DNA of 64,000 bases, from NCBI RefSeq assembly GCF_000006765.1, contig NC_002516.2; one strand, given 5' to 3'. Made by a program: the position numbers and the translations under genes. Numbering within the stretch: the first letter of the stretch is position 1; every line of letters begins with the position of its first letter. This document shows positions 1,322 to 62,105 of this stretch, in pieces. The notes under the pieces are model-generated. The model saw only the letters and a list, made by a program, of their open reading frames with translations, was not told where the DNA came from and did not search any database. The stretch is from Pseudomonas aeruginosa PAO1. Lineage in GTDB: Bacteria; Pseudomonadota; Gammaproteobacteria; Pseudomonadales; Pseudomonadaceae.

Positions 1322-1327
1322 AAACGT

Positions 1328-3426: not shown

Positions 3427-3459
3427 CATTTCCGGATCATGGCAAAAGGCCTCGAGTGC

Positions 3460-3493
3460 CTGTCATCGTCCCGTCGCTTTCAGCGGTTAGCGT
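3460..3493 (+). promoter_or_regulatory. Putative Pho box and -10 element
   Basis: CTGTCAT-N4-CCGTCGC (3460-3477), then 10 nt, then TAGCGT (3488-3493); this is PhoB-type spacing, upstream of a PhoX gene. Confidence 0.5.
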
Positions 3494-3529
3494 CAATGCT
3501 CCGTCGATCAGCCCACAAGGAGCACGTCC

Positions 3530-39481: not shown

Positions 39482-39581
39482 ACGACCGCCCGGTCGGAGC
39501 AGACCGGGTCCGGCGCGCAAACCTGCTACCATGGCGCCCCCATTCCGGTTGTCCGATAACCCCGATCCAGAGCGCACTACA

Positions 39582-39938
39582 GTGGAACTCTTCAAAGAAT
39601 TCACCTTCGAATCCGCCCATCGCCTGCCCCACGTCCCCGAAGGCCACAAATGCGGGCGCCTGCACGGCCACTCGTTCCGTGTCGCCATCCACATCGAAGG
39701 CGAGGTCGATCCGCATACCGGCTGGATCCGCGACTTCGCGGAAATCAAGGCGATCTTCAAGCCGATCTACGAGCAACTCGACCACAATTATCTGAACGAT
39801 ATTCCAGGCCTGGAAAACCCCACCAGCGAAAACCTCTGCCGCTGGATCTGGCAACAACTCAAGCCGCTGTTGCCGGAACTCTCCAAGGTCCGCGTCCACG
39901 AAACTTGCACCAGCGGTTGCGAATATCGGGGCGATTGA
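39582..39938 (+). CDS. queD: 6-carboxy-5,6,7,8-tetrahydropterin synthase, 118 aa
   Basis: [35 protein letters not shown]. Confidence 0.92.
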
Positions 39939-40245
39939 TTCGCCCGACTCTCCCCTGGCGCTTCGCCATCTGCTCTAAAACGGGCTTCCACACAACGGGC
40001 CCGTTCTGCCGTCTCTCTCCCATGGGTTGTACGAAGCATTATCCCCACGGACATAAAGGTTTCATATTCTTCCGGGAAACATCCGGCAAGCTGTCCCTAC
40101 AGTCCGTTAGTCAATAAATCCGTGTAACTATATTGTTCTTCCAGTAGATAAAGACTTATCCTTTGCCGCGGACACGGAAAGTCCGTAAAGCCACTATAAA
40201 TGCACCAAAACCCAGCACCATATTTTTAGAACGGGAGTGAAACGA

Positions 40246-40599
40246 ATGTCCAAACTTGCCGAGTTCCGCGAGGCAGAGCGCAAACTTCAGGAGCAACTGG
40301 CCCTGCTGGAAAAGCTGAAAAGCGACAGCAGCCTGAAGCAGGAACTGGAATTCAAGGACAAGTTGCAGGCGTTGATGGACAAGTACGGCATGACCCTGCA
40401 CAACATCATCGCCATCCTCGACCCCAAGGCTCCGGTCACCGTCAGCGCCGCTCCGCAGCGCCGTGCCCGCGCCCTGAAGGTCTACAAGAACCCGAACAAC
40501 GGTGAAGTCGTCGAAACCAAGGGCGGCAACCACAAGGTTCTGAAAGCCTGGAAAGAACAGTACGGTTCCGAAACCGTCGAATCCTGGCTGCAACGCTAA
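40246..40599 (+). CDS. mvaU: H-NS-like xenogeneic silencer MvaU, 117 aa
   Basis: MSKLAEFREAE; KVYKNPNNGEVVETKGGNHKVLKAWKEQYG. Confidence 0.95.
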   Translation: MSKLAEFREAERKLQEQLALLEKLKSDSSLKQELEFKDKLQALMDKYGMTLHNIIAILDPKAPVTVSAAPQRRARALKVYKNPNNGEVVETKGGNHKVLKAWKEQYGSETVESWLQR

Positions 40600-40604
40600 G
40601 CCGG

Positions 40605-40640
40605 TTTTCCCGACGGCATCCTGCCGATGCCGTCGGAAAC
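40605..40640. terminator. Hairpin between convergent genes
   Basis: CCGACGGCATC-CTGCC-GATGCCGTCGG flanked by TTTT and AAA. Confidence 0.7.
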
Positions 40641-40674
40641 CCCACTGGCTACTTTCGCTCCCCTCCTCGCCAGA

Positions 40675-40955
40675 TCAATTCTGCGACTTCGATTCGCAAG
40701 CGCTCCTGATCTTCTGCGCCGCCAGGTTGTTCTCCACCCCCGGCAGGTTCTCCAGCAGACACTCGTAATAAGCCTTTTCCCGCGACAGCAGGAAGGAGCC
40801 GTCGTTATACAACTTGTCGCAGGCCTGGGTGATGAAGTGAACCGCACCCCGCTCTTCGCCGTGCGTTGGTAGTCGAGTATGCATTGGTCGTAGTCCTTGT
40901 CGTCGGCGAGAGCGGAAAGCGGGAATAACAGCAGCAGGGGCAGCAGGAACTTCAT
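40675..40955 (-). pseudogene. Frameshifted gene for an exported four-cysteine protein (VF_A0006-like)
   Basis: N-half MKFLLPLLLLFPLSALADDKDYDQCILDYQRTAKSG and C-half AVHFITQACDKLYN...YYECLLENL...IRSACESKSQN are in different frames and join at a G4 tract (40847-40850). The span is 281 nt, one short of 94 codons. Confidence 0.75.
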
Positions 40956-41233
40956 GGCAATGGTATCCATGGGAAAGTTGTGCTCCAGCATGGACGAGCC
41001 GGCTCGGAGTGCCAAGCCGACCATGAAGTAAAATTTTGCACTTGTTTACAGGCCGGACCAGACTGGCCGTTCTTCGCTGCGCGAATGCGACAATGGCGGG
41101 CCGGGGAGCCGAATCGCAGGCGTCCCGAGCGGATTCGGTTTCCCGGCCGCCTGGCGGCAACTCGCTCCATCGACGGGCACCGCCCTCCGCCGAACTCTTC
41201 CGGCAAACGGGTGCTGCCCGATCCGCATCCGCT

Positions 41234-41818
41234 TCAATAGGCCGCTACGAACAGGAACGACAATTGTAGATTGAGCATGGGCGACAACATATTGTTCAGT
41301 TCCAGAAACTCCACCGATACTTGTCGCTGCTCCGCTTCTATATCCTGCAACAACCGACTGAACGAGGCTGGCTGCAACTGCCCGCGAACCTGGGCCTCGA
41401 TACGCGCGATCGTCCCTTGCTTCTCGAAGCCGCGAGGAAGCAGTACGCTCACTTCCGCGTCAGGGACGCCCGCCAGGCGAACCCGCTCGGTCAGCCAGGC
41501 CTGCACATCGGCCCTCGCCTGCGACGCATTCGGCGCCTGCCAGAAGCGCTCTCGCTGAAGGTTCAGGACCTGCTCCGCCTGCATCGCCCGCTCCGGCCAG
41601 GCGGTCTGCCGGGAAACGTCCTGGAGCTTGAGCCATTCCCCGGCCAGACGACGATATTCCTCCCCTCGTTCCTCCCTCCAATCCATGCTGAGCATGACCA
41701 GATGCACAACCAGCAGCAGGCACAGGCTCCAGATGGCCATGCGCAAGAGTGGTTTTTCCTGCCATTGTCGTTGCAGGTTCCGCCCCTGGAACTGCAGTGA
41801 TCGCTGGAAGTCCGACAT
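41234..41818 (-). CDS. T2SS GspM/PilO-like inner-membrane protein, 194 aa
   Basis: ATG overlaps the upstream TGA; a single N-terminal TM segment, coiled coil and ferredoxin-like C-terminus; last gene of the gsp-like operon. Confidence 0.65.
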   Translation of the reverse strand: MSDFQRSLQFQGRNLQRQWQEKPLLRMAIWSLCLLLVVHLVMLSMDWREERGEEYRRLAGEWLKLQDVSRQTAWPERAMQAEQVLNLQRERFWQAPNASQARADVQAWLTERVRLAGVPDAEVSVLLPRGFEKQGTIARIEAQVRGQLQPASFSRLLQDIEAEQRQVSVEFLELNNMLSPMLNLQLSFLFVAAY

Positions 41819-42930
41819 CAGGCACCCTCCCCCGGCGTACGCAGGACCAGGCTCAGCGATAGCCCCTCGCTCTGCGAAGGTTCCACCCTGACATCTTCGA
41901 AACTCCCCGACTCCATGAAACGCCTCACATAGAGACGCGGGTCGACACTGTCGGTGCCAATCCGCAACTCCAGCTCGGAGCCTCGATAGCGCCAGGCGAG
42001 CAACCGACTGTCCTTCGGCAACAGTTCCGCTACCTGTCCCAGCAGCGCCACCTGCGAGCGATGCTGCAAAGCGCGCCCCAGCTCGGTGGCCATCCGATTG
42101 GTCTGCAAGGCCTGGTTGCGTGCGCTGAGGATCGGCGAGACCTGGCCGCTCAGCTGGTCGTACTGCGTTCGCAGCGCACGCTCGGCCCACCACCAGGACA
42201 AACCTTCCCCCAGATTGAATCCGCATCCCAGCAACAGGGTGGCTATGAGCCCATGCGGCAACCAACGCTCCCATCGCAGCAGCGTTGCTTCCGCCGCCGG
42301 AACGGCCCAGGGACGGCCCAGTGACTCTCCAGGCTCGGCAACCAGGCTCTCCGGGATGCGTATTCCCGCCAGCCCCCGGAGCAACCGAACCCATTGTTCT
42401 GGCTGGGGTGGGCTGGGAAAGAAATGGCTCAGGACAAGGCAGTCATCTCTCCAGACCTGGAGATCCAGCCCGGAGCGAACCCGAAGCAGCCGAACCGTCT
42501 CGCCTTCCGCGATCGACCGAGGGGGAGCCTGCAGCAGGGATTCGGGGATACAGCGATAACGCCGAGGTTGGTCGACGCAGTCTTCGGCAACGGCCTCCCG
42601 GACCTCCTCATCCCAGAACCAGACCAGAGCATGGCCACCCCGCCAGGCTACGTAATGGCCTGCGCGGCGAAAAGGCGCCAGGGCGGCAAGCTTCAACGCC
42701 AGTGCCTGATACCGGTCAGAGCGCGGCACATGATTGAGATCGAGACAGCGATAGACACACCACGCCCGATCCACGATCCACTGCGCTGGGGCGCGCCGCG
42801 CCAACCCTGTACCTCTACGTACCCACTCAAGCTGCGCCCGGCCATCCTTACCACGGTCTTGCCACAAGCGGGGCGGCAAGAACCCCGGGGGCGATATCGG
42901 GATGCAACGGAGGATTCGAGTAGCGATCAT
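41818..42930 (-). CDS. T2SS GspL/PilN-like protein (start uncertain)
   Basis: Cytoplasmic domain, TM segment (GLIATLLLGCGF) and PilN-like periplasmic end; located between the GspK-like and GspM-like genes. Confidence 0.65.
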   Translation of the reverse strand: MIATRILRCIPISPPGFLPPRLWQDRGKDGRAQLEWVRRGTGLARRAPAQWIVDRAWCVYRCLDLNHVPRSDRYQALALKLAALAPFRRAGHYVAWRGGHALVWFWDEEVREAVAEDCVDQPRRYRCIPESLLQAPPRSIAEGETVRLLRVRSGLDLQVWRDDCLVLSHFFPSPPQPEQWVRLLRGLAGIRIPESLVAEPGESLGRPWAVPAAEATLLRWERWLPHGLIATLLLGCGFNLGEGLSWWWAERALRTQYDQLSGQVSPILSARNQALQTNRMATELGRALQHRSQVALLGQVAELLPKDSRLLAWRYRGSELELRIGTDSVDPRLYVRRFMESGSFEDVRVEPSQSEGLSLSLVLRTPGEGA

Positions 42931-43927
42931 TTATCTTCACGGACCTCTTCGAGAGAAGCTGCCAGGGTGGCAGCAGGCGGTGCTCTGAGTTGAAGCGGAC
43001 CTCGTATTCCGTCCCCTGCTCGGCTCCTGGCGGGTAGAGCCGAATCGACAGGACCGGACTGGCCAGGCGCGCCCATCCATCCTCGGGAACCAGCCTCGCA
43101 TGACCCCCGAGGACGTCATGCAGGTCCGACATCCGGGTGAACGGACGCTGCCAGCGGGCTTGCAGCAGTCGGCCGACAGCGTCCTCCGGTAGTCCCCAGG
43201 CAAGAGACAGGATTCGGGCATCCGCGGTGTTGATGTTCAGCGCCGCCTCGTCCGCCGCGACCAGATCGCGCCAACCGGCGTCGAGCAAATGCGCTTCCCA
43301 GGGGCGCCAGGCCTCCAGCCGGAAGACTTCCATCACCGAGCGCAACGGACGGCGCCGGGCCTGGCCCGGAGAGGACCTGTCGCTGGCTTGCGCGGCACTA
43401 CCCAGTCGTGGAGCGGCGCCGGGATAGAGATAGCTGAACCATTGGGCGACCATGACCTGCACCTGCTCGGCGGGAACCCCCAACCCCGCCAGCAGCCTGG
43501 ACAGTACCCGCGGATCGATGCCGGAAAGACTGAGGCGCGCAGAGCGATCGAGCAGCGCAACGCACCAGCCATTGGCCATGCAGAACTCCCGGCCATCCAG
43601 AGGCAGCTCCCCGCCAATGGGCAGGATCGAAGTGTCCATGTCCACCTTGCTCGGCGCGGCGCCAGCATTTCCCGGTACGCTCAGGCCCGCGACGGTATAG
43701 CGCTGGGTAGCCACCAGCCATTGGACCCGCGCCAGCAAGGCATGCTCCTCCAGCTCACGAAGCAGCACCTTGCGCCGGTTTTCCGTGGCATCCAGCGAGC
43801 GCCCGACCCAGAGTACAGCGGCACTGGCCAGCAGGGTCATGATGGCCAGGAACCAGACCACTCCGACCAGAACGAAGCCAGACGAGCGGGCAGACGCCGC
43901 ATGTCGGCGTGCGCCATCAGAAATCAT
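42848..43927 (-). CDS. hplX: T2SS GspK-like minor pseudopilin, 359 aa
   Basis: Prepilin-like SG|FVLVGVVWFL lacking E5, as expected for GspK; helix-hairpin segment LNINTADARIL. Confidence 0.75.
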   Translation of the reverse strand: MISDGARRHAASARSSGFVLVGVVWFLAIMTLLASAAVLWVGRSLDATENRRKVLLRELEEHALLARVQWLVATQRYTVAGLSVPGNAGAAPSKVDMDTSILPIGGELPLDGREFCMANGWCVALLDRSARLSLSGIDPRVLSRLLAGLGVPAEQVQVMVAQWFSYLYPGAAPRLGSAAQASDRSSPGQARRRPLRSVMEVFRLEAWRPWEAHLLDAGWRDLVAADEAALNINTADARILSLAWGLPEDAVGRLLQARWQRPFTRMSDLHDVLGGHARLVPEDGWARLASPVLSIRLYPPGAEQGTEYEVRFNSEHRLLPPWQLLSKRSVKINDRYSNPPLHPDIAPGVLAAPLVARPW

Positions 43928-44507
43928 GTTCGGCGGGCCTCGCTCTGGGCAGTGCGACCGCGACAAGGACAAACAGACGCTCCTCGGGAGCCGCCAGTGC
44001 CATCGCCTCGGGAAGGGTATCGGCCAGTTGCGCGCTCGGCGGCCAGTCCCGGTGCCACTGGCCGTGACCGTCCAGATAGCGGAAGCGAGCTTCGCCGCGC
44101 AGATGCAGGAGGGGCCAGCGACTGTCCTCCAGCCTTCGCACATAGATCAACTCGGTCCGGTCCTCTCCTGCCCGCCGCTCAAGCCGGAAGGCCAAGGGCG
44201 TCGGGATGCCCGCACGGCGATCCAGGGCCGCGGCAGACATGGCCTCGAAACTGAGTTCGTCCCCTCGCAGACGCCAGCGGACCTCGCCAGCCTCGGGAGC
44301 GACCAGGTTCTCCACCGCATCACGGAACCAATCGAAGGTCAGCGCCCGGACCTGTCCGCGCCCCAGGTTCTGGTGCAAGGACTGGTTGGCCTTGCTGGCA
44401 TAGCTCAACCCTTGCATGAGCAACGTGCCGATGAAGGAAACGACCAGCAGCACCACGATCATCTCGAGCAGGGTGAATGCACCCTGTTTTCGTCGCGAGC
44501 GGATCAT
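43917..44507 (-). CDS. hplW: T2SS GspJ-like pseudopilin
   Basis: KQGA|FTLLEMIVVL class III signal. Confidence 0.8.
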   Translation of the reverse strand: MIRSRRKQGAFTLLEMIVVLLVVSFIGTLLMQGLSYASKANQSLHQNLGRGQVRALTFDWFRDAVENLVAPEAGEVRWRLRGDELSFEAMSAAALDRRAGIPTPLAFRLERRAGEDRTELIYVRRLEDSRWPLLHLRGEARFRYLDGHGQWHRDWPPSAQLADTLPEAMALAAPEERLFVLVAVALPRARPAEHDF

Positions 44508-44929
44508 GGTCCATCACCCAGTCGCGCTGGGATGACCACGTACCCGGGAAGCTCCAGTTGCAGCGTCTGCGGCGTTCCATCGCCGGCCCGGATGTTGGCG
44601 ACGACCCTGAACAAGGTCACGTCGTAGATGCCCGGACTGCCGCTATGGCGGCCCACCGCCGCTTTCGATGCGGACAGTGGCGAACTTCGCCACTCCAGCC
44701 GGTAATGCCCCAGCCGGACCCTGCCTGCGGGTTCGAGCGCAGGGTTCATGCGCTCCAGATAGGCCATCGCCACCCGGGCCGTCTCAATGCGCAGCTCGGC
44801 CGCCTCGACCCGCTGCATGCTCCGAAAGGCACTGTTGAGCCAGGCGAAAAGCGCACCGCCGACCACTGCCAGGAGCGTCAGCGCAACCACCGCCTCCAGG
44901 AGCGTGAAGCCTTCCTGCCGCGCCGGCAT
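44504..44929 (-). CDS. hplV: T2SS GspI-like pseudopilin
   Basis: RQEG|FTLLEAVVAL; ATG overlaps the upstream TGA. Confidence 0.8.
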   Translation of the reverse strand: MPARQEGFTLLEAVVALTLLAVVGGALFAWLNSAFRSMQRVEAAELRIETARVAMAYLERMNPALEPAGRVRLGHYRLEWRSSPLSASKAAVGRHSGSPGIYDVTLFRVVANIRAGDGTPQTLQLELPGYVVIPARLGDGP

Positions 44930-45333
44930 CAGCGGATCGTCCCGGGCGCGCAGAGGGGTGGCTGAAGCAGCAGCGTATGTGTCGCGCGCCCATGATGGAC
45001 CTGCAACTTTCCGCCCAGGCAAACTCCGTTTGCCATGTAATGTATCGGCGGCCGAGCAGTAACCGTCCAGCCATCGGGCAGTCGCAGCAACTGCTCGGGA
45101 ACCGCCCCGCTCTCATCAATGAGCAGCTCCCGCCCGTCGCTGCGCACGCGATAGCCCAGGGTCTGCAATTGATTGAACAGATCGTCCAGCGCGGTCCTGC
45201 GCGCCCAGGTCTCCTGCATCCTCACCAGGCCGGGCAACGCTACCGCAGCAATGGCCCCGACGATCACCAGCACCACCAGCAGTTCGAGCAAGGTGAACGC
45301 GGCCTGGTCAACGTTTGGGCGCGTAACCGACAT
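44929..45333 (-). CDS. hplU: T2SS GspH-like pseudopilin
   Basis: DQAA|FTLLELLVVLVIVG. Confidence 0.78.
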   Translation of the reverse strand: MSVTRPNVDQAAFTLLELLVVLVIVGAIAAVALPGLVRMQETWARRTALDDLFNQLQTLGYRVRSDGRELLIDESGAVPEQLLRLPDGWTVTARPPIHYMANGVCLGGKLQVHHGRATHTLLLQPPLCAPGTIR

Positions 45334-45742
45334 CGGCATCCAGGCCTTTCCCACCGGGCTGCCCATCCGCGCCCTGGCTGTAGAGAGTGAAGGGTTGTTC
45401 GGCACTCGGCCTGTCGCTGTACAGGTAAGGTCGGTTCCAGGGGTCCAGCGGTACGCCGCCCTCGAGGTAGGGCCCGTGCCAGAAGGCCCCGAGACGTTCA
45501 TCGGAAGGCGGCGTGTTGAGTAGCGCCAGGCCTTCTTCTTCGGTCGGCAGCCGGCCGATGTCCAGGCGCATGGTGAGCAACGCGCCCTTGAGCATCTTCA
45601 CCTGGGTATCCGCCGTCTGCGCCTTCGCCTTGTCGGCCTGATTGAACAGTCGCGGCCCGACGAGCCCCATCAGCATGCCGATAATCACCAACACCACAAT
45701 CATCTCGAGCAGGGTGAAGCCCTGTTGTGCAGCTCTGTTCAT
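45308..45742 (-). CDS. hplT: T2SS major pseudopilin GspG-like
   Basis: QQG|FTLLEMIVVLVIIG; GRLPTEEEGLALL, WHGPYL, LDPWNRPY, YSQGADG. Confidence 0.92.
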   Translation of the reverse strand: MNRAAQQGFTLLEMIVVLVIIGMLMGLVGPRLFNQADKAKAQTADTQVKMLKGALLTMRLDIGRLPTEEEGLALLNTPPSDERLGAFWHGPYLEGGVPLDPWNRPYLYSDRPSAEQPFTLYSQGADGQPGGKGLDADVGYAPKR

Positions 45743-45795
45743 ACGGTTTCCACTTCACGTCTCATCCAACCAGCCGCGGCATCGATACCCGGCAT

Positions 45796-46983
45796 TCAAA
45801 GCACCATGTCGTTGGCGCTGGTAATCGCCAGTACCACGCCGGTAATGATCAGGCCGAACACAGAGCCGATCAGCAGGATCGCCAGAGGCTCGATCAGCAC
45901 CAGGGCCTTTTTCATTCGCGCCTGCCCGACCTCTCCATAGAGCGTCGCCAGGCTCTGCAGCATCTCCGCGAGCTGCCCGGAGGCCTCTCCAACCCGCACC
46001 AGGCTCGAACCGATGGACGTGACCGCCTGGCGCTCCTCCAACGCTGCCGACAAGGCGATGCCGGCCCGCACATCCTGGGTGACTCGCTCCAGGGTCCGGC
46101 GCTGCCGGGCAATGCGGACGCCATCGGCGGAAAGCGCCAGGGCCTCCACCAGCGGCACACGATTTCCCAGCAGGGTTCCAAGCACCTTCGACCATTGCGC
46201 TATTTCCGCCTGCATCAACCATTCCCCGACTACGGGCAGGCGCACCAACTGGTCGAGCGCATGGGCGCGGAGCGCCGGATTGCGCAGCGCCACGGCAATG
46301 CCGCCAGCAAGCAGCAGGACGGCGAACGCCAGCAAGCCGGAACTCTCGTTGCTCCATACCCCGATGCTCAGCACTGCCCAGGCAAGCCACGGAAGCTGGG
46401 CGGTCTCGTTCAGGAGATTGGCGAATTTCGGAACGACGAAGACGAACAGGGTCGCCACGGCGAGCACCCCGCTGAGCACCAGAATCGCAGGGTAGATCAG
46501 CGCCCCTTGCAACTCGGCGCGGGTTCGCCGTTCGTATTCCATCTGCGTGGCACAGTCCCTCAGGGCTCCTGCGAGGTTTCCGGTCATCTCGCCGGCCGCC
46601 ACCAGTTGATATACATAGCGCGGCAGGTCGAGGCCGGCGCTCTCCAGCACCACGGGAAAGGATTGCCCCTGGCGCAGACCATTGGCCATCGCCTGCAGGG
46701 CGGAAATCAACTTCGGGTGGCGCGCGCCTCGCTCCTGGGCCTCCACCGCGTCGGCCATGCTCACTCCCGCCGCGAGCATGGTGGCCAGCTCGTGGATGGC
46801 CATGTTCAATTCCTCGGCCTTGAGCCGACGTCGCGAGCCCAGGTTGCGGCGTTTCACCTCCAGGCTGAGCGGGGTGAGCCCCTGGCGCTGCAACTGCCGC
46901 AGCGCATCCTGGCGCGTGGGGAGGCAGAGTTCGCCACGAACGCGCCTGCCCTTGCGATCGACGGCTTGGTAGATGAAATTCAT
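45796..46983 (-). CDS. hplS: T2SS GspF-like platform protein
   Basis: Duplicated GspF domains (AAGEMTGNL; VGEASGQL), ALIYP, LIEP. Confidence 0.92.
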   Translation of the reverse strand: MNFIYQAVDRKGRRVRGELCLPTRQDALRQLQRQGLTPLSLEVKRRNLGSRRRLKAEELNMAIHELATMLAAGVSMADAVEAQERGARHPKLISALQAMANGLRQGQSFPVVLESAGLDLPRYVYQLVAAGEMTGNLAGALRDCATQMEYERRTRAELQGALIYPAILVLSGVLAVATLFVFVVPKFANLLNETAQLPWLAWAVLSIGVWSNESSGLLAFAVLLLAGGIAVALRNPALRAHALDQLVRLPVVGEWLMQAEIAQWSKVLGTLLGNRVPLVEALALSADGVRIARQRRTLERVTQDVRAGIALSAALEERQAVTSIGSSLVRVGEASGQLAEMLQSLATLYGEVGQARMKKALVLIEPLAILLIGSVFGLIITGVVLAITSANDMVL

Positions 46984-46987
46984 GGAC

Positions 46988-48715
46988 TTAGCCGCTGGTC
47001 ACGCGATGCACCTCGTCAAGACTGGTCATACCCAACCAGGCCTTGATCAAGCCATCTTCACGCAGATTGCGCTGTCCCTGGCTGGCGGCAAGCCGATGCA
47101 TCTGTTCGAGGGAAGCTCTCTGCACGATCAGGTCGCGCATCTCGGAAGACAGATCGACGAGTTCGTAGATGCCCACACGGCCGCTGTAGCCGGTACCTTC
47201 GCAGCGGCCGCAGCCTCGCGCCACGCGCCATTGCGCTGCCTGCCCCGGGAACAGCCGCGCGGTGGCCGCCTCGGTCGCTGCCAGATCGGCCGCAGCAAGG
47301 GTTGGCTCGCAAGGTTCCGCGCAGTGGGCGCACAACCTGCGCACCAGTCGCTGGGCCTGGACACCGCGCACCGGCGAAGCCACCAGGAAGGGTTCCACGC
47401 CCATGTCGATCAAACGCGTGAAGGCGCTCACCGCATCGTTGGTATGCAGGGTCGAAAGCACCAGGTGACCGGTGAGCGAGGACTGTACGGCGATCTCCGC
47501 CGTCTCCAGGTCGCGTATCTCCCCGATCATGATCACATCGGGATCCTGCCGCAGGATCGAGCGCAAGGCGGCAGCGAAGGTCAGGCCGATGTCGGCATGG
47601 ACCTGGACCTGGGTGATATTGGGCACCTGGTATTCCACGGGATCTTCCACGCTGATGAGCTTGCGCACGCCATCATTGATTTCCTCCAGCGCGCCATAGA
47701 GCGTGGTGGACTTGCCCGATCCGGTGGGGCCGGTCACCAGGATGATGCCGTGGGGTTCCGCTACCCATGCACGCATCCTCCGCAAGTGGTCCGGGAGCAT
47801 CCCGAGCCGGTCCAGGCGCAACCCCTCGCGCTCCTTCGGCAACAGGCGCATGACCACCGATTCGCCATGCACCCCTGGCAAGGTGGAGACCCGCACGTCG
47901 AGCTCCGTACCGCTGACCCGGATGCTCATGCGTCCATCCTGCGGCAACCGTCGCTCCGCGATGTCGATGGCGGAGATCAGCTTGATCCGCGAGACGACCG
48001 CCGCGAATCGCTCGCGGGGAAGGCTCAGTTGGTCGTGCAGGACGCCGTCGACGCGGAAGCGGATACGGAAGTCGAACTCCCGGGGTTCGATGTGAATATC
48101 CGAAGAACGCTTTTCCATGGCCTGGCTCATCACGTTGTTGACGAGTTCGACTACCGGCGCCTCCTCCGCCAGCTCCCGCAGGTAGCGGATGTCTTCGCTG
48201 CCGTAGGCGTGCCGATCCGCACCTTGCCGGGCCAGGTCCAGGGAGTGCTCCAACCAGCCGTCCAGATCCTGGGAGCGGCACAGCACTGCTTGAATCGAGC
48301 GCTCCGGATAGAAATAGCCCAGGGTTTCGCGTATCGAAGGAGATAACGGATCACGCGCCGCGAACAGCAGTTGTTCGCCCTCCTCCCAGACCACCAGTTG
48401 CTCTTCGACGAACCAGTCGGTATTGATCGGGGTACTGAGCAGGAATGCGGCGATGGACTCTTCGCTCGGCTTCCGCAGGTCGTCCCCCACCAGCGGCAAC
48501 CGCAGTTGCTCCGCCAGCACCTGCATGAGGGTATTTTCCGAGATGGCTCCGGAACGCACGAGAATGCCTCCCAGACGGCCGCCAAGCCGGCGTTGCAGGT
48601 CGAGCGCCCGCTCGAGTTCCTGGCCGCTCACCAACCCGCGTTCGAGCAAACGCTGCCCCAGCGGTATCCACTCGGCCGTCATCTGCGGGCCCGGGGAAAC
48701 GGCCTCAGAGGACAT
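46988..48715 (-). CDS. hplR: T2SS GspE-like ATPase, 575 aa
   Basis: SDIHIEP, ERRLPQDGR, Walker A GPTGSGKSTT, LRQDPDVIMIGEIRD, CAHC...CGRC Zn motif. Confidence 0.95.
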   Translation of the reverse strand: MSSEAVSPGPQMTAEWIPLGQRLLERGLVSGQELERALDLQRRLGGRLGGILVRSGAISENTLMQVLAEQLRLPLVGDDLRKPSEESIAAFLLSTPINTDWFVEEQLVVWEEGEQLLFAARDPLSPSIRETLGYFYPERSIQAVLCRSQDLDGWLEHSLDLARQGADRHAYGSEDIRYLRELAEEAPVVELVNNVMSQAMEKRSSDIHIEPREFDFRIRFRVDGVLHDQLSLPRERFAAVVSRIKLISAIDIAERRLPQDGRMSIRVSGTELDVRVSTLPGVHGESVVMRLLPKEREGLRLDRLGMLPDHLRRMRAWVAEPHGIILVTGPTGSGKSTTLYGALEEINDGVRKLISVEDPVEYQVPNITQVQVHADIGLTFAAALRSILRQDPDVIMIGEIRDLETAEIAVQSSLTGHLVLSTLHTNDAVSAFTRLIDMGVEPFLVASPVRGVQAQRLVRRLCAHCAEPCEPTLAAADLAATEAATARLFPGQAAQWRVARGCGRCEGTGYSGRVGIYELVDLSSEMRDLIVQRASLEQMHRLAASQGQRNLREDGLIKAWLGMTSLDEVHRVTSG

Positions 48716-49523
48716 CTGCAAAACCTTCCTGAACCCGACGGAACCAGAGGAAGCCCGATGAACAGACCAGCAGAGACGCAACGCAATAAACGCTGAAGAC
48801 CCCAAGGGTCGGATAGGGAGCATCGAAAAGGATCGCCCTGACCATTTCCACCGGGATCGTCAGCGGATTGAGGTACAGGTAGGGCTGCATTACCGGTGGC
48901 AAGGAAGACAGCGGATAGAACACCGGGCTGATGAATAGCAGAAGCACCAGGAGAAACTGGACGAACTGCCCTATGTCGCGAACATAGACCCCGAGCCCCG
49001 CGAGGAACCACGCCAGCCCCGTCACGCAGAGCAGGAAGGGGAGCAGGGCAAGCGGTAGCAGAACCAGTTGCCAGCCTGGCTCGACGCCGCTGAAGAGAAG
49101 AAAGATACAGAGCACCAGGTAGCCGAGCATGGCGTTGAAGAAAGCGGCCAGCAGCGGTGTGAGGGGGAGTATCTCCAGGGGAAAAACCAGCTTCTTCACG
49201 TAGTTGGCGTTGGCCTGGATGATAGTCGGGGCCCTGGACAGGCTTTCAGCGAGGATCCCGTTCAGCAGGAGTCCGGAAAACAGGGTCAAGGCGAAGGAGA
49301 GCGTGCTCTGGCTTCCACCCCAGCGCGACTTCAGCACGAAGCCGAAGACAAACGTATAGATCAGCAAGAGCAGGAACGGCGAGACGATGATCCAGATGCG
49401 GCCCAACATGGCGTCGCGATAACGCAGTTCGACCTCGCGCCGGGTCATGACCAGCAGGAGCCTGATGCGACTGGCGAGACTGGCCGGTACCAAGAGGGAA
49501 CCACTCACAGAAAAACTCTCCAC
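48705..49523 (-). CDS. ABC-2 polysaccharide export permease, Wzm-like (PA2678-like)
   Basis: REVELRYRDAMLGRIW, ANYVKKLVFPLEIL, RDIGQ, FISPVFYP, LNPLT. Confidence 0.88.
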   Translation of the reverse strand: MESFSVSGSLLVPASLASRIRLLLVMTRREVELRYRDAMLGRIWIIVSPFLLLLIYTFVFGFVLKSRWGGSQSTLSFALTLFSGLLLNGILAESLSRAPTIIQANANYVKKLVFPLEILPLTPLLAAFFNAMLGYLVLCIFLLFSGVEPGWQLVLLPLALLPFLLCVTGLAWFLAGLGVYVRDIGQFVQFLLVLLLFISPVFYPLSSLPPVMQPYLYLNPLTIPVEMVRAILFDAPYPTLGVFSVYCVASLLVCSSGFLWFRRVQEGFADVL

Positions 49524-50099
49524 GGCGAAGAAGAACAGAACCCGCTAACCATGAAGGATCGAAGCGAGCGGGGCCATCAGCCCCCACTACTTCTGGCGTA
49601 AGGTTTTTCTGATTCAAGAAGAGCCTTCAGAAGGCCGGAGCAAGCCGGCACTCTCGCCAACTCGATCTCCCATCGGCTCCGTACCTGCTGGAAAGCACGT
49701 GGGTAACCCCGACAATGGCAACGGCTCTCAAGGTGAGGGGCCGGACTGCGCGGAGTGCACCCTCGATTCAGCAGCCAGCGGCAGGGAAACCGGGACGAAA
49801 GCAAGACTCATCCTGCAATCGGGGCGATTTCTTCATAGCGCTGGAAAACCTCGCTCAGTGAAACGAAAGCACGCACTGAGCGCCCCGTACGCCAGGAACT
49901 GGCAACCTGCACGCCGACCCGGCCTGGGGCGGCATGGCGAGTTCGACGAATACGACTCGGCGCACCACCTGCCCCCTGTGCCCGCGCTCAAGCGACGCCG
50001 CGGCTGCCAAGGGGTTGCAGCGACCTGCGTAGACGGCAGGCGGACGCGATCGGCGCTCTCCCCGCCGTCATGGTTGAGTTTCGGATTGCGTCCGATGGC

Positions 50100-50852
50100 T
50101 CAGCGGATCACCCCGGCGCGCACCGTCAGCGGCCAACTGACCCGATAGCGCGTCTGCGGGTCGCCCCAGGCTTCGCGCAGCTCATCGACGAACGCGGCGC
50201 CCGGATCCTGGCCAAGGGCCTTGCCGGCCTCCTTCACCGCCGACCAGGTACCGACGTAGCCCAGCAGCTCGTCCAGGGTCCAGGCCACCTCGATGGCCAG
50301 GTCCGGCAGGCGGCGCTCCTCGAAGGGGAACGGCAGATTGCGGTAGCCCTCCTCCACGTGGCGCCGCTCGGCAGGCCAGTAGGGGCCGACGACCTGGTGG
50401 TAGAAGTGCTGGACCAGCGGTTCCATGGGTCCGTCGACATGCAATACGCCATAGGTAACCAGGGCCAGGATGGCGTCCGCGCGGGCCACACGCCGGACTT
50501 CCTCGTAGAAGCGCGGCAGGTCCAGCCAGTGGGCGGCCTGGGCGACCGTCACCAGGTCGGCGCTGGCCGCCGCCAGTCCGCTGTCCTCGGCCAGGGCCAC
50601 GCGATACTCGACCCGCTCGCGAGCCTGCGCCTTGTCGATCTGCGCGGCGCTGGCGTCGGTACCGACCACCCGTTCGAAACGCTCGGCCAACAGCACCGTG
50701 AGCTGTCCGGTGCCGCAGCCGCAGTCCAGGGCCAGGCGGGTGCCGGGGCAGAGCGCGGCCAGCTCGTCGACCAACTGCGCCGGGTAGGTCGGACGATGTG
50801 CGGCGTAGTTCGCCGAACCCGTGGAGAAATGATCCTTGAAAGGTGCCGTCAT
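50100..50852 (-). CDS. Class I SAM-dependent methyltransferase, 250 aa (PA2679-like)
   Basis: YAAHRPTYP, ALDCGCGTGQ, VTVAQAAHW. Confidence 0.9.
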   Translation of the reverse strand: MTAPFKDHFSTGSANYAAHRPTYPAQLVDELAALCPGTRLALDCGCGTGQLTVLLAERFERVVGTDASAAQIDKAQARERVEYRVALAEDSGLAAASADLVTVAQAAHWLDLPRFYEEVRRVARADAILALVTYGVLHVDGPMEPLVQHFYHQVVGPYWPAERRHVEEGYRNLPFPFEERRLPDLAIEVAWTLDELLGYVGTWSAVKEAGKALGQDPGAAFVDELREAWGDPQTRYRVSWPLTVRAGVIR

Positions 50853-50978
50853 GGGACTCTCCCGAAATGATCCCGGCGACCACAGGGACCATGGCCGTCC
50901 AGGCTGCCGCCTTACACTAGGCGAATCCTGTCGATACGGAAACACGACTTTCGGTCACCTTGGAGCACCGTCTCACTA

Positions 50979-51005
50979 CTGCATGCGGTGCAGCAATCAA
51001 CTGCA
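50979..51005. promoter_or_regulatory. Possible LysR-type binding site upstream of the quinone oxidoreductase gene
   Basis: CTGCA-N5-TGCAG contains T-N11-A (50980-50992) and overlaps a second dyad TGCAG-N7-CTGCA. Confidence 0.4.
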
Positions 51006-55560: not shown

Positions 55561-55752
55561 TCACTCGTCCAGGTAGCCGTCCCTGATGCCCTTCGAGCGG
55601 CGGTAGAGGTAGAGCCCGAGGCGCAGCACGACGAGCACGCCGAAGAACACCCCGACGGTCACCCAGGTGTTGCCGAAGAACCATTCCAGGCAGACGTAGA
55701 GCAACGCCAGCGGTATGCAGACGAGGGTCATCAGCAGGTAATGCTTGATCAT
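55561..55752 (-). CDS. tsi5: Tsi5 immunity membrane protein (63 aa; alternative start at 55791 gives 76 aa)
   Basis: Two TM helices; ATG overlaps the tse5 stop (ATGA) and is preceded by GAGGAG. Confidence 0.85.
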   Translation of the reverse strand: MIKHYLLMTLVCIPLALLYVCLEWFFGNTWVTVGVFFGVLVVLRLGLYLYRRSKGIRDGYLDE

Positions 55753-58700
55753 TGCGGCGGACACTCCTCTTCTTCGTCCTTCAGTGGGCATTTGACGATC
55801 TGCTTGCCCGTCTGCCAGGCGGCCTGGGTGGCCACGGCCTTCTTGATGGTATCGGCATGGGCGGCCTTGCGCGCGGCCAGCTTGGCCGCGCGGTTGGCGG
55901 TGTTGGCCGCCTGTCCGGAAAGGGTCCTGATCGCCTTGGCGGACTGCACCACGGTCTTGCCGGTGCTGAGCATGCCCGGCGCCACGGTGCCGATGGCCGC
56001 CGAGGCGCCGACGTGTTTCCAGTTGATGTCGATGCACTTCCACTTGATATCGGTGAGGTCGCGATCGCTGTCCCAGTTGTCCTTCATCTGCCCCAGCACC
56101 TGCTTGCCGGTCTGCATCCCCAGCTCGATGCCGGCGCCCAGCGCCGCTCCGATCGCGGCGCGGGCGGCGAAGGCGCCGATCACCACCAGCGGGATGATCA
56201 GGCCGGTGGGATCGTAGGCCAGCGTGGGCGCGTTCAGCGCGTAGGCATAGGGGTTGGGGCCACCGCCCAGGCCGAGCGGGTCCTGGCTGGCATAGCGCCC
56301 GGCTTCCGGCAGGTAGTAACGGTAGCGGTTGTAGTAGAGGCCGCTTTCCTCATCGTGGTACTGCCCCTGGAAGCGGATCGGCTGCGCACCCGGCTGTCGT
56401 TCCGGCGCTACCGCCCGCCAGTCGTCCGGAACGCCCTGCCAACGCAGTTGGCCACGTTCGTCGCTCAGCTGCAGGGGGGTACCGAGGTGATCGGTGTGGA
56501 AGAAAGCGATCCGCGCCTCGCCCAGCGCCGGCACGCATTGCGCCGGCAGCGGCTGGCCTTCGGCGGCGAACGCCTGGCGCAGTTGCAGCAGCTCCGGGGG
56601 ATCGGGCTCGCAGGCCTGCTCCAGGCGCAGCAACGGGACGAAACCGCCCGGTTCGTGAACGGTGGTGCGCAGTTCCCGCGCAAAGGCTTCGGCGCATTGG
56701 CGATCGCCGTCCCAACCGAAGCGCACCTGCTGCTCGACACCGTCGCGCAGCACCACCTTGGCGATCCGTCGCGACAGCGCGTCGTAGCGGTAGCGCGCCT
56801 CCAGCCGCGTACCGTCGGCGTAATCGCGCGTCAGATGGACCAGGCGCTGCGCGCCGTCGTAGGCCAGGCGCAGGCGCTCGCCGTCGGCGCCGATACGCTC
56901 GACCAGGTTGCCCAGCGCATCGAAGCGATAGCGGTTGCCGGCGATCCTCTCCACGCGGTTGCCGGCCCAGCGCGCCGGGCCTTCGCCGGCCTGGCTCGCG
57001 CGCGTCTCGGAGCGACTGAAACCGGAGCGGTACAGTTCGTTCTCGGCGAATGCCTGGCGAGCGTCCTCGCGCGCGTGCTCGCCGACGCCCTCCAGGCGGT
57101 TGCCGGCGGCATCGTAGCGGTAGGTGCTGGCCGCCGCGCCAGCGCGCCGGCTGGCCAGCAGGCGACCGCCGAGGTCGTATTCGTAGCGCACCGACGGATA
57201 CTGGTTGTCGTCGATGCCGACCAGTTGTCCAAGTCCGTCGTAGCGATAGCCGCGCTGCCAGTCGAAACCGCCGGCCAGACGCAGGCGGCTGCGCTGCAGG
57301 CGTCCCAGCGGCGCGTGCTGGCGCTCCTGGGTGAACAACGCGTCATCCTGCCCGTCGCGGCGGGCGTCGCGACGCACCTCACGGTGCAGGGCATCGCGCT
57401 CGAAGGCCAGCTCGACCGCACCGACCAGCGCGCCGTGCAGATGACCCGGGCCATAGGTCAGCCAGGCGACCGGCGGCGCGTCGCCGTAGCGGCTGGTCTG
57501 GCGCACGCCTAGCGCGTCGTGGCTGTGCTCGACGCTGTAGACCCAACCGTCGGCATGTACCTGGCTTTCCAGGCGCAGGTTACCGACCTCGTCGTACGTG
57601 TAGCGCACCTCGCAATCCGCCCCGCCGGCGCTGGCCAGGCGGCCGTCGGCCAACCAGCGGTAACGCTCGACCAGGGCCGGTGCGTGCTCGGTGGCGGGAA
57701 CCCGGATGCTCGCCAGGCGGCCGTCGCGGTCGTAGGCATAGGTGGTCTCGCGACCGTCGGCATCCTCGCGGGCGATCAGTTCGTCAGCGGCGTTGTAGCG
57801 ATAGCGTTGGCGACGACCGTCGAAGCCGGTCTCTTCCACCAGACGGTCCAGCAGGTCGTAGCGGAACTGCGCCTGGACGCCGTTCTCGTTGGTCAGGGCG
57901 ACCAGCCTGCCGGCTTCGTCGTGCAGGTAGGACAATTCGCCGCCGCCGGCGTCGGAAACCCGCGCCAGCAGATCGCCGTGCCCCCAGGAAAACAGCGTGG
58001 CGTGCCCCTCGGCATCGGCGATACGGGTCTGCCGCCCAAGGGCGTCGTATTCATAGCTCAGGGCGCTGCCGTCGGCCAATTCCAGGCCGATCAGTTGCCC
58101 CAGCGGGTCGTAGCGGCGCCGGGTCAGTTGTCCCAGCGGGTCGCTGCTGGCGACCAAACGTCCTTCGTTGTCGTAGTCGTAACGCCAGACCTGGCCGGAA
58201 CAATCGGTCAACGCGGCCAACAGGCCGAAGCGGTTCCACTCCAGGCGCCGCTCGCCGCCGCGCGGGTCGACGATTCGCGTCGGCCGGTCGGGCAGGCGCG
58301 GGTCTTCGTAGGCGTAGCGGGTGCTGCCGGCCGGGCCGCGCACCGTCGTCGCATTGCCCCGTTCGTCGCGCTCGAAGGTCCAGCGGCGCTGCATCGCGTC
58401 CTCCAGCTCGACCAGCAGCCCGGTCTCTTCGTCGACGCGCTTGCGATAGCGCGCCTTGCCCGGCGACTCCTCCTCGAGCATCCGCCCCTGGCCATCGCGC
58501 CGGCGCCGCGTCTCCCGTCCCAGCGGATCGCGCATGGCGACCAGGCGGCCGAACAGGTCGTAGTCGAACTCGCTACGGCTGCCGTCGGCCCTGACCAGCG
58601 CGGTCCAGCGCCGCTGCCCGCCCTCGCCGGCGAACTCGTAGCGTTCGACGCGGCCGAGGCTGTCGCTGACCTCGGTGGCATCGCGCAGGTAGCGGAAGGT

Positions 58701-59702: not shown

Positions 59703-59751
59703 CTATCCATCCTTCCTTGGGAAAAGCCGCGACAGGACATCCGCCCGCCGC

Positions 59752-61821: not shown

Positions 61822-61826
61822 GGGGA

Positions 61827-61838
61827 ATCTTCCTTGAT
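61827..61838 (-). promoter_or_regulatory. RsmA/CsrA-type site over the vgrG ribosome-binding site
   Basis: The minus strand reads ATC-AAGGAA-GAT: an ANGGAN hexaloop on a 3-bp stem, matching (A/U)CANGGANG(U/A). Confidence 0.65.
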
Positions 61839-62066
61839 AGTCACCTGCGGCGGGCGGCCCGAACAACGCGCCAGCAGCGCGCCAGATGATCGTACAACCC
61901 AGTGCCGTCGCGAAAGGCTGGCCAATAGCCACGACACTCCTGCCCGCCTCCTGCGGACCCGCCGACCCTAAGCCAGAACCAAAGCCGAAGCAACGACGGC
62001 TTTGTCGAAAAGTATTTCCGCTCCGAGCACGCTGCGGCGCATTGGCCCATTGCCCGATACCCGGCA

Positions 62067-62105
62067 AAAATGAGATATTCACGAACGTGAATCATTCTCA
62101 TATTT
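62067..62105. promoter_or_regulatory. Fur-box-like region upstream of and at the pfeR start
   Basis: AAAATGAGATATTCAC...GTGAATCATTCTCATATTT, two Fur-like half-arrays in inverted orientation. Confidence 0.65.

Follow-up and report, generated by a model that had tools for sequence, protein, structure and literature searches.

The closest described counterpart of the locus analysed here is the Sps/VapA A-layer cluster of Aeromonas hydrophila AH-1 and A. salmonicida A450, which lies within an ABC-2-dependent O-antigen cluster (PMC4413209, PMC4483657). There, as in the Pseudomonas clusters described below, wzm (whole or truncated) stands directly upstream of the secretion genes E, F, G, H, I, J, K, L, and M, which are followed by a small ORF of about 166 aa, the secretin gene, the gene of a secreted structural protein, and Wzt. 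A sulfotransferase-domain ORF (in A. salmonicida), glycosyltransferases, and a UDP-sugar epimerase are also shared. More partial parallels exist within Pseudomonas. Hxc/LapA and the PA7 system Txc/CbpE are likewise additional type II secretion systems (T2SSs), dedicated to a cargo encoded next to them and expressed only under special conditions. This is established knowledge, supplemented by the title of the Txc paper in the references of PMC12369383. Both, however, are complete in one locus and lack Wzm/Wzt or glycan genes, and their ATPases failed to bind c-di-GMP (tested for HxcR; PMC4624772). XphA/XqhA is a C-D pair encoded apart from E-M genes that, according to a published proposal and general knowledge, can function with Xcp components. 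Finally, MshE-type ATPases, such as that of the Vibrio cholerae MSHA pilus, bind c-di-GMP with high affinity through an N-terminal MshEN domain (PMC4624772, PMC5013675), but MshE drives a type IV pilus.

The operon examined here is PA2669-PA2678, the Hpl type II secretion operon of P. aeruginosa, which has been termed "incomplete" or "truncated" (PMC12369383, PMC3764216). In the window, the 64 kb stretch of PAO1 DNA that was analysed, it occupies positions 41234-49523 on the minus strand, in the order wzm-E-F-G-H-I-J-K-L-M, and all ten genes are intact. The coordinates give overlaps of 11 nt (wzm/E), 32 nt (G/H), 1 nt (H/I), 4 nt (I/J), 11 nt (J/K), up to 83 nt (K/L), and 1 nt (L/M), with gaps of 4 nt (E/F) and 53 nt (F/G). 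Downstream lie fhp, fhpR, ptpS, mvaU, and a small ORF, and upstream a methyltransferase, an ADH, and a LysR gene. A tblastn search of the whole 64 kb window found no match to the cognate secretin, the GspC-like protein N, Wzt, the PA1383 family, or a glycosyltransferase, and no remnant of an N or D gene downstream of the gspM-like gene. The sequence-only reading had described a tightly packed operon with two gaps and no local secretin, GspC, Wzt, glycosyltransferase, or substrate. The layout held on coordinates and family assignments, and the absence of these parts now extends to the whole window.

The first gene, wzm (48705..49523, minus strand), encodes a PA2678-like ABC-2 permease of the polysaccharide type (Pfam ABC2_membrane, 99 bits). 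Weak NCBIfam matches to Wzm/RfbD and KpsM both fall under their cutoffs. It starts at 49508 in the annotated 267-aa form and at 49523 in the longest ORF, and it is the first operon gene in all Pseudomonas relatives. A Dyella homologue, 49% identical, sits in a classical wzm-wzt(Wzt_C)-glycosyltransferase locus. The start codon of the next gene, hplR/gspE (46988..48715, minus), lies inside the final codons of wzm; the same embedded ATG is used by wzt in Dyella and by gspE in all Hpl-type loci. HplR is a 575-aa secretion ATPase (T2SSE, 450 bits; TIGR02533, 572 bits) with an N-terminal MshEN c-di-GMP-binding domain (motif NF053729, 61.6 bits, cutoff 38). Its PA14 counterpart, PA14_29490 (575 aa, within PA14_29480-570), binds c-di-GMP with a Kd of 480 nM (PMC4624772, PMC3764216). 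By a strict pattern of our own, several relatives have an incomplete tandem MshEN motif.

The remaining genes, all on the minus strand, fill the T2SS slots with varying support. The platform protein HplS/GspF (45796..46983, 395 aa) scores 161 bits to Pfam T2SSF and 230 bits to TIGR02120, the latter below the equivalog cutoff. The major pseudopilin HplT/GspG (45308..45742, 144 aa) is recognised by TIGR01710 (192 bits, cutoff 88.85), T2SSG, and N_methyl. Three minor pseudopilins carry the N_methyl motif: GspH-like HplU (44929..45339, 136 aa; start set by the gene calls of orthologues), with a weak GspH match; GspI-like HplV (44504..44929, 141 aa), matching XpsI with E 5e-8; and GspJ-like HplW (43917..44507, 196 aa), with a weak T2SSJ match. 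The GspK-like minor pseudopilin HplX (42848..43927, 359 aa) matches NF037980 GspK with E 1.1e-7, below cutoff, and is 47-59% identical to the gene in the K slot of relatives. The PA2670-like gspL-like gene (41818..42930, up to 370 aa, start uncertain) is so named because it sits between K and M and is syntenic with SpsL (PMC4413209). It is 49-56% identical to the L-slot gene of relatives, but no match was found in Pfam, NCBIfam, or PDB sequences, even with an orthologue profile. Its single-sequence model is poor (pLDDT 43), and only a C-terminal alpha-beta-beta-alpha-beta-beta domain has moderate confidence. The last gene of this half, the PA2669-like gspM-like gene (41234..41818, 194 aa), matches NF040576 GspM/XpsM (E 1.6e-7) and T2SSM_b (E 9e-4), both below cutoff, and is 62% identical to the M gene of Metapseudomonas resinovorans. 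The lack of profile support for the gspL-like gene and the sub-cutoff matches of K, M, and N are weak points of the split-system reading set out below.

The missing parts were located through relatives. The query, used without recourse to PAO1 gene names, was the secretin encoded after the homologous operon of M. resinovorans. It retrieved two P. aeruginosa secretin clusters at 75% identity, the same level as other Hpl components; the P. aeruginosa secretin is 72-75% identical to this query. The island so identified lies between PA1380 and PA139x and reads aceK...AraC, a 163-aa GspC-like protein, the secretin, a 601-aa signal-peptide protein, an epimerase, GT1, Wzt (ABC_tran plus Wzt_C), a sulfotransferase, GT2, GT1, and GT2. 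Published names in this island include PA1382/xqhB, PA1383, PA1384 galE, and the glycosyltransferase PA1385 (PMC7044273, PMC8850804, PMC9736018), as well as PA1393, which is cysC (PMC3327687). The secretin scores best to TIGR02517 GspD, while three of five members of the N family match Pfam T2SSC (best E 2.7e-5), below curated cutoffs. Both P. aeruginosa loci form one contiguous, colinear, same-strand cluster, wzm-E..M-N-D-X-epimerase-GT-Wzt-sulfotransferase-GTs, in P. citronellolis and in a P. jinjuensis-like genome. In it, N is a short GspC-like protein, D is the secretin, and X is a secreted protein of 605 aa. All 19 genes recur in P. aeruginosa in unchanged order, with a break between M and N. 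These genes are 45-80% identical in amino-acid sequence between the contiguous clusters and P. aeruginosa, and the GC gradient along the contiguous clusters is that of the two P. aeruginosa pieces. M. resinovorans and Pseudomonas sp. BN415 are split at other junctions with the parts kept, and these splits arose independently.

This synteny in sister species supports the idea of a split system. The Hpl operon is probably half of an ancestrally single cluster, a dedicated Sps-like T2SS embedded in an ABC-transporter-dependent glycan locus; it would supply the inner-membrane part of the machine, with the outer-membrane pore encoded in the island. The sequence-only reading had proposed the PA1381-PA1393 island as the home of the missing secretin, Wzt, glycosyltransferases, and cargo, and had allowed that unrelated secretin or Wzt genes in intact loci would refute this. 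The placement is supported by synteny, and the intact loci use PA1382 and PA1386 orthologues; expression, interaction, the glycan, and the cargo remain undemonstrated. Its Aeromonas analogy also held and is closer than it had stated, gene for gene (PMC4413209, PMC4483657). It counts against the split-system reading that no direct evidence links the two P. aeruginosa loci by co-expression, co-occurrence across strains, or interaction.

An alternative is a hybrid machine, in which Hpl borrows XphA/XqhA (PA1867/68), as proposed by Skurnik et al., or XcpP/Q, and PA1381/PA1382 serve something else. XphA/XqhA insertions are likewise depleted in the caecum, and the pair could conceivably provide the missing XcpP/Q-type functions (PMC3764216). 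Orphan C-D pairs are also generally known to be able to substitute in this species, and PA1381/PA1382 are a second such pair (the name xqhB is used in PMC7044273). However, in all the Pseudomonas relatives examined, the C-D genes physically linked to the hpl operon are orthologues of PA1381/PA1382, and their divergence resembles that of the other components. PA1381/PA1382 are thus the ancestral neighbour of the Hpl genes, unlike XphA/XqhA, and we consider the hybrid unlikely.

The likeness to Sps rests on gene order and sizes, without a sequence orthology comparison. SpsM has 198 aa against 194-199 in Pseudomonas, Orf2 166 against 162-183, and SpsD 743 against 758-770. In contrast to Aeromonas, the P. 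aeruginosa cluster is divided over two loci, and its ATPase, longer by about 24 aa, has tandem MshEN c-di-GMP motifs and demonstrated c-di-GMP binding. PA1383, which fills the cargo position, has 601 aa and no detectable family; its homology to VapA is untested. Its model is of moderate quality only (pLDDT 72), and Foldseek returned generic beta-sandwich surface proteins at TM 0.35 or below. No S-layer is known from P. aeruginosa.

Could glycan export and secretion be two independent functions, an LPS-type glycan unrelated to secretion and a T2SS block inserted by chance between wzm and wzt? The Aeromonas authors read the S-layer genes as such an insertion, without functional coupling; vapA mutants retain O-antigen while wzt mutants lose it (PMC4413209, PMC4483657). 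The gspE start falls exactly at the wzt start site, as insertion predicts. Nevertheless, several gamma- and betaproteobacterial lineages have Wzm/Wzt genes next to Hpl-type T2SS genes, and the association recurs, in differing arrangements, in Pseudomonas, Lysobacteraceae, other Pseudomonadales, and Betaproteobacteria. In Lysobacteraceae the PA1383 family (hhalign probability 97.3%, E 2.7e-11) adjoins Wzt and a sulfotransferase, divergent from wzm-T2SS; the Hpl-type loci of Cellvibrio, Undibacterium, and Polaromonas, which are more distant, had no PA1383-family gene that could be found nearby. The inferred translational coupling of wzm to gspE persists in loci whose wzt lies kilobases or megabases off, expression of PA2676-78 shifts jointly (PMC8619066), and the Aeromonas A-layer is tethered by that LPS, so both functions are linked there (PMC4483657). 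We rate independence as improbable.

On the split-system reading, the likely though undemonstrated function is twofold: secretion of PA1383 by a T2SS that c-di-GMP gates and MvaT/MvaU silence, and ABC export of a glycan that is probably sulfated. HplR, activated by c-di-GMP via its MshEN domain, would power an HplT-X pseudopilus on an HplS/L/M platform, and PA1381 would connect this platform to the XqhB (PA1382) secretin supplied in trans. The most likely cargo would be PA1383, predicted to be an all-beta multidomain protein exported by Sec; its gene comes right after that of the secretin, where Aeromonas has the VapA gene. The operon Wzm would pair with Wzt/PA1386, whose Wzt_C domain is expected to recognise a chain-terminal cap. 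Together they would flip an undecaprenyl-linked glycan made by the island glycosyltransferases and modified by the island sulfotransferase, with PAPS supplied by CysC/PA1393. The secreted protein may then be tethered or decorated by the glycan at the cell surface. Translation of hplR would begin at the ATG in the wzm stop region that serves wzt in classical wzm-wzt pairs, from which we infer coupled synthesis of permease and secretion ATPase.

A published study reports that PA1383 carries a signal peptide, that it is translated, and that MvaT and MvaU repress it (PMC8850804); it was also detected in a surface-shaving proteome (PMC8959810). The operon is GC-poor (0.64 versus 0.67 in its neighbours, with GC3 also below theirs) and adjoins mvaU (40237..40599, plus strand), a gene outside the operon that encodes an MvaT-family xenogeneic silencer (Pfam MvaT_DBD, 78 bits). 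From these observations we infer that both halves are silenced in the laboratory, which, if true, could account for no Hpl substrate having been found. The upstream non-coding region (49524..50099, minus strand, 576 nt), presumed from position only to hold the operon promoter, showed no sigma-70 consensus, no above-chance terminator signal, and no Rfam family.

The lack of a known substrate and of a promoter consensus would also fit a decaying relic, a non-functional remnant left after secretin loss with wzm as a leftover, as would the published terms for the operon and its absence from P. paraeruginosa (PMC12369383). This is very unlikely and is largely refuted by the selection data. In four alleles no gene of the ten is broken, and dN/dS is 0.17 at dS 0.16, not near 1, the value that the sequence-only reading had named as a sign of decay. 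At the second locus the cognate C-D pair and the partner genes are likewise intact in the alleles compared, with a dN/dS of 0.125, so purifying selection acts on both halves. HplR occurs with exactly this sequence on at least 1000 contigs, c-di-GMP binding is kept (PMC4624772), and transposon insertions across PA14_29480-570 reduce caecal colonisation (PMC3764216).

A last alternative is that the pseudopilins build an MSHA-like, c-di-GMP-dependent surface fibre or pilus, the ATPase being a reciprocal best hit of MshE. HplR does score 511 bits to TIGR02538 PilB. We regard a fibre as very unlikely, however: G is clearly GspG, the secretin is GspD by best score, and the gene set and order H-I-J-K-L-M-C-D are those of a T2SS.

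The operon occupies 41234-49523 on the minus strand and consists of 10 closely packed genes, all of them intact; two junctions have gaps, of 4 and 53 nt, and all others overlap. The gene order across the window (nuo genes, fhp, fhpR, ptpS, mvaU, the operon, a methyltransferase and, further on, Rhs and VgrG), taken together with the literature, identifies it as the "putative incomplete Hpl T2SS, PA2669-PA2677" plus PA2678 (PMC12369383, PMC3764216, PMC8619066). The operon is thus already known and named. Its wzm gene encodes an ABC-2 permease (ABC2_membrane, 99 bits) of undefined subtype, the NCBIfam equivalog scores being far under cutoff; it is 49% identical to a Dyella Wzm that partners a Wzt_C-type Wzt. 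The 575-aa ATPase GspE (HplR; T2SSE, 450 bits) and the platform protein GspF (HplS; T2SSF, 161 bits) have TIGR02533 and TIGR02120 as their top matches, both below the equivalog cutoff, and GspG (HplT) is clearly a major pseudopilin (TIGR01710, 192 bits vs a cutoff of 88.85). The H, I and J slots carry prepilin N-methylation motifs and weak H/I/J-type matches, and the K slot a weak GspK match (E 1e-7), all under the curated cutoffs. The order and sizes of these minor pseudopilin candidates fit a T2SS, with only weak profile support throughout. Weak matches to GspM/XpsM and T2SSM_b were also found for the M slot. HplL matched nothing in Pfam, NCBIfam or the PDB sequences, even when an orthologue profile was used, and its single-sequence AlphaFold model was too poor for a structure search; that it is the L component is inferred only from its position between K and M. 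No prepilin peptidase is encoded in the window. The T2SSs of P. aeruginosa share PilD/XcpA. Such sharing has likewise been suggested for this system (PMC3764216). The methyltransferase gene upstream of wzm (50100-50945) was considered as a member of the system and rejected: it has core-like GC3, is missing from the clusters of relatives, and is also dissimilar to the Lysobacteraceae methyltransferase.

The sequence-only reading had described a packed operon, with the two gaps at the lengths given here, that lacks a secretin, GspC, Wzt, glycosyltransferase and substrate. Profile searches and searches of the full stretch uphold this description: no candidate for a secretin, GspC, Wzt, glycosyltransferase or cargo turned up in any part of the 64-kb window. 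P. citronellolis and a strain of Metapseudomonas have the same operon, again headed by a Wzm homologue (59-78% identity), and there it runs beyond M into a small ORF and then a secretin of ~765 aa. Scanning a single genome for each species with an alignment of HplS yielded 68 loci, and in tblastn maps M. resinovorans, P. jinjuensis, P. schmalbachii, P. citronellolis and P. delhiensis showed the order wzm-E-F-G-H-I-J-K-L-M-N-D. A search with the secretin embedded in the M. resinovorans operon recovered two clusters of P. aeruginosa secretins that share 75% identity with it, the level seen for the other components (Wzm 77%, E 80%, F 75%, G 85%).

These secretins lie in a second P. aeruginosa locus, in the order aceK, acetyltransferase, SDR, AraC, a 163-aa ORF, secretin, a 601-aa protein, epimerase, GT1, Wzt, sulfotransferase, GT2, GT1, GT2. 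The 163-aa ORF overlaps the start of the secretin gene. The secretin has 758 aa (TIGR02517, E 1.6e-75) and the Wzt 418 aa (ABC_tran and Wzt_C). Published gene names place PA1382/xqhB, PA1383, PA1384 galE and PA1385 here (PMC7044273, PMC8850804, PMC9736018), and PA1393 is cysC (PMC3327687). The missing parts had been assigned beforehand to the PA1381-PA1393 island; the secretin search led to that very island, and the assignment held by synteny. With the N gene products of relatives the 163-aa protein shares 43-53% identity, and three of five members of this family match Pfam T2SSC (best E 2.7e-5); on these grounds we regard it as a short GspC-like protein. The P. aeruginosa member itself scores 17 bits against T2SSC, under the cutoff. 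That this protein and the secretin are supplied in trans from the second locus is inferred from the synteny of their orthologues in sister species.

In P. citronellolis (CP174502.1) and a P. jinjuensis-like genome the entire set forms one same-strand cluster adjoining cmk, in the order wzm-E-F-G-H-I-J-K-L-M-N-D-X (605-608 aa)-epimerase-GT1-Wzt-sulfotransferase-GT2-GT1. These contiguous clusters contain only one Wzt, the orthologue of the second-locus Wzt. All of the 19 P. aeruginosa proteins compared, 10 from the window and 9 from the second locus, are colinear with the contiguous cluster at 45-80% identity, and GC falls along the contiguous clusters in the same way as along the two P. aeruginosa pieces. 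We therefore conclude that an ancestral cluster was cut between M and N in P. aeruginosa. Comparative genomics thus supports the earlier proposal that the two loci form one export system, a proposal whose functional side remains inferred. No remnants of N or D were found downstream of hplM, and the two P. aeruginosa breakpoints have only chance 8-9-mers in common as repeats. A single inversion may have caused the split, a possibility that rests on the opposite strands of the hpl operon and PA1383; the latter lies on the plus strand at ~1.50 Mb in PAO1 (PMC8850804).

P. aeruginosa is not the only place where the cluster is divided. In M. resinovorans (L005) it is split after the secretin, unrelated genes follow, and the T2SS block from wzm to D sits beside fructose-PTS genes; in Pseudomonas sp. 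BN415 (L085) the X-epimerase-GT-Wzt-sulfotransferase block stands alone near cmk. Together these two genomes represent an alternative split, between the secretin and the PA1383-like gene. More distant Hpl-type loci, each with its own secretin, occur in Lysobacteraceae, other Pseudomonadales and Betaproteobacteria, and many have Wzm plus a nearby Wzt. In Thermomonas and Cognatilysobacter a divergent operon adjoining wzm encodes a familyless protein of 494-647 aa, a Wzt with Wzt_C, and a sulfotransferase. The different split junctions and this divergent layout show that genomes keep the modules together and that these need not be co-transcribed. As a separate observation, a sulfotransferase beside Wzt is kept upstream of wzm in four Lysobacteraceae Hpl-type loci (L011, L015, L047 and L055; 50-60% mutual identity), and the protein after Wzt in the Pseudomonas clusters is a different, larger Sulfotransfer_3 protein.

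The junction of wzm with gspE is an 11-nt overlap (48705-48715) located at the wzt start site. We compared the wzm 3' ends of the window, M. resinovorans (L005), the contiguous clusters (L079, L080), three Lysobacteraceae loci (L011, L047, L055) and locus L004. Within the sequence for the conserved Wzm C-terminus, GFADV[L/V]-stop, there is an ATG in another frame, 11 nt ahead of the stop codon's end. This embedded ATG starts wzt in a classical wzm-wzt pair in a Dyella O-antigen locus, and it starts gspE in every Hpl-type locus examined, in both Pseudomonas and Lysobacteraceae. Since the embedded ATG is common to wzt and gspE, the secretion ATPase occupies the exact wzt slot. The start of HplR, MSSE, is fixed over three to four residues by the overlapping wzm codons. 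Translational coupling of gspE to the permease gene is likely, as presumed from the overlap, and is an inference from sequence alone.

A close counterpart of this arrangement is known from Aeromonas, in which the order is (wzm)-SpsE-F-G-H-I-J-K-L-SpsM-Orf2 (166 aa)-SpsD-VapA-(Wzm)-Wzt-glycosyltransferases-UDP-sugar epimerase (PMC4413209, PMC4483657). In A. salmonicida a sulfotransferase-domain ORF follows wzt (PMC4483657), and the Aeromonas A-layer is tethered by LPS from that cluster (PMC4413209, PMC4483657). The genes of the Hpl operon and the island correspond one to one with those of the Sps cluster, with nearly equal sizes. In both, the T2SS block comes right after wzm and ahead of wzt and the glycosyltransferases, contiguously in L079 and L080 and in two pieces in P. 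aeruginosa; Wzt, sulfotransferase, glycosyltransferases and epimerase follow D-X in L079, L080 and the P. aeruginosa second locus, again as in Aeromonas. Unlike Sps, the Hpl system is split in two and has an MshEN c-di-GMP input. The Hpl operon and the PA1381-9x island thus probably constitute a split Sps-like system, a conclusion reached by analogy of gene order and size and without sequence comparison with Sps or VapA.

The slot directly after the secretin, occupied by VapA in Aeromonas, is filled in P. aeruginosa by PA1383, a 601-aa protein with a Sec signal peptide that is predicted to be all-beta. Its family is narrow and unannotated, with no match in Pfam, NCBIfam or the PDB sequences and no named homologue; a HMMER search gave 200 representatives, and none of the 10 looked up had an informative name. 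Its C-terminal 244 columns are homologous to Lysobacteraceae proteins (hhalign probability 97.3%). The AlphaFold model is all-beta and multidomain (pLDDT 72, pTM 0.57), and in Foldseek it gave only weak, generic matches to Ig-like surface proteins (Gram-positive pilins, MSCRAMM adhesins and integrin ectodomains), with no enzyme fold seen. On this weak, model-based evidence PA1383 could be a secreted structural or adhesive protein. It has been detected in one surface-shaving proteome (PMC8959810). Remote homologues of its C-terminal region occur as a tandem pair in Beggiatoa leptomitoformis (L084, 8547-11428); the pair adjoins a glycosyltransferase-type gene that is Maf-like (MptE/Maf_flag10), and there is no T2SS in the vicinity. 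This setting hints that the family may consist of glycosylated surface proteins.

The N-terminus of HplR matches NF053729 (61.6 bits vs a cutoff of 38) and Pfam MshEN (28.6 bits vs a cutoff of 23.1). Two copies of the MshEN motif were found by a search with a 24-residue pattern after PMC5013675. The presence of the motif does not depend on this pattern, since the NCBIfam and Pfam matches and a published binding assay carry the point: PA14_29490, the PA14 counterpart of hplR, binds c-di-GMP with a Kd of 480 nM (PMC4624772). No Rfam family was matched in 39500-51000, which excludes a recognized c-di-GMP riboswitch there. A promoter and terminator scan of 40500-50200 found no sigma-70 consensus, and terminator-like sites only at chance level.

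An alternative reading is that Hpl is a decaying relic, for which relaxed selection (dN/dS near 1) had been proposed as the sign. Three further P. aeruginosa operon alleles are 91-98% identical to the window and have 10 of 10 genes intact, with a dN/dS of 0.17 at a dS of 0.16 (Nei-Gojobori). The second locus exists as two haplotypes 4-10% apart, with a dS of 0.20 and a dN/dS of 0.125, and PA1383 shows 68.5 synonymous vs 7.5 non-synonymous differences between them. The flanking aceK is 99.25% identical despite the divergent haplotypes (second-locus regions L074 vs L076/L077). The selection test therefore failed to refute the split-system proposal. The exact HplR sequence is present on at least 1000 contigs, and the second-locus secretin cluster has 1249 distinct members. 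Besides the c-di-GMP binding, further published observations are on record: insertions across PA14_29480-570 lower caecal colonisation (PMC3764216), PA2676-78 are regulated jointly (PMC8619066), and PA1383 is translated and is repressed by MvaT/MvaU (PMC8850804). Given intact genes, low dN/dS at both loci, the wide occurrence of HplR and these published observations, the relic reading is very unlikely and we do not consider it tenable. Hpl is reportedly missing from P. paraeruginosa (PMC12369383). The operon had no plasmid match by megablast, and the supplements of PMC12369383 hold no data on presence or absence of PA1382-86.

Several further features of these alleles were observed. Haplotypes at both loci are deeply divergent (dS 0.16-0.20), a pattern typical of surface-structure loci. 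The assembly GCA_028331285.1 has its PA1383 homologue divided into two called ORFs of 353 and 217 aa, amounting to one break (L073, 12814-14609); upstream in its second locus are a transposase and a NACHT gene, both missing from the other strains.

For a long time Hpl has been counted as the third T2SS of this major model pathogen and called "incomplete", a label kept in a 2025 paper; the orphan secretin XqhB lacked a role, and PA1383-PA139x was an unexplained low-GC island. As two halves of one conserved cluster, these loose ends become one testable system with named candidates: PA1383 as cargo, a Wzm-Wzt pair, and c-di-GMP input via HplR. MvaT/MvaU are the likely reason for its silence in the laboratory. 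A bolder reading, which we offer tentatively and regard as less likely than not, is that P. aeruginosa, a model organism in which no S-layer is known, has an Sps-like system that is complete but divided and silenced. At high c-di-GMP levels, once MvaT/MvaU silencing is lifted, it would export PA1383 via XqhB, and PA1383 would be anchored or decorated by a sulfated, ABC-exported glycan; a T2SS in a Wzm/Wzt locus would then be a module for assembling protein and glycan jointly at the surface, widespread among Proteobacteria and not an Aeromonas peculiarity. Its function here is inferred. If true, the system would give the cell a surface coat of protein and glycan under certain conditions, with relevance to gut colonisation and phage sensitivity. 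The Aeromonas S-layer arrangement is also generalised, since T2SS genes recur in Pseudomonas and Lysobacteraceae at precisely the start site of wzt, and looser versions of a T2SS within a glycan locus occur in other Proteobacteria. The cluster has been split independently at more than one junction, which shows its modules to function in trans; genome-mining pipelines should be used with caution here, as split systems get scored as incomplete.

Some observations concern the surroundings of the operon. The operon and its partner locus are each lower in GC than their surroundings. Two genes beyond the downstream end of the operon is mvaU (40237-40599), which encodes a xenogeneic silencer. A small PA2668-like ORF after hplM (40600-41030, minus strand) is outside the ancestral cluster. 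In the three other operon alleles (L081-L083) it encodes a 98-aa signal-peptide protein (Pfam VF_A0006); in the window it lies in two frames, and hence differs from them by one frameshift. Upstream of the locus the window encodes Rhs (1317 aa) and VgrG (776 aa) at 55749-62082, in place of which L081-L083 have amino-acid ABC transporter and DHDPS genes (1-4000). The Rhs/VgrG region is a T6SS effector island, variable between strains, that lies near the operon.
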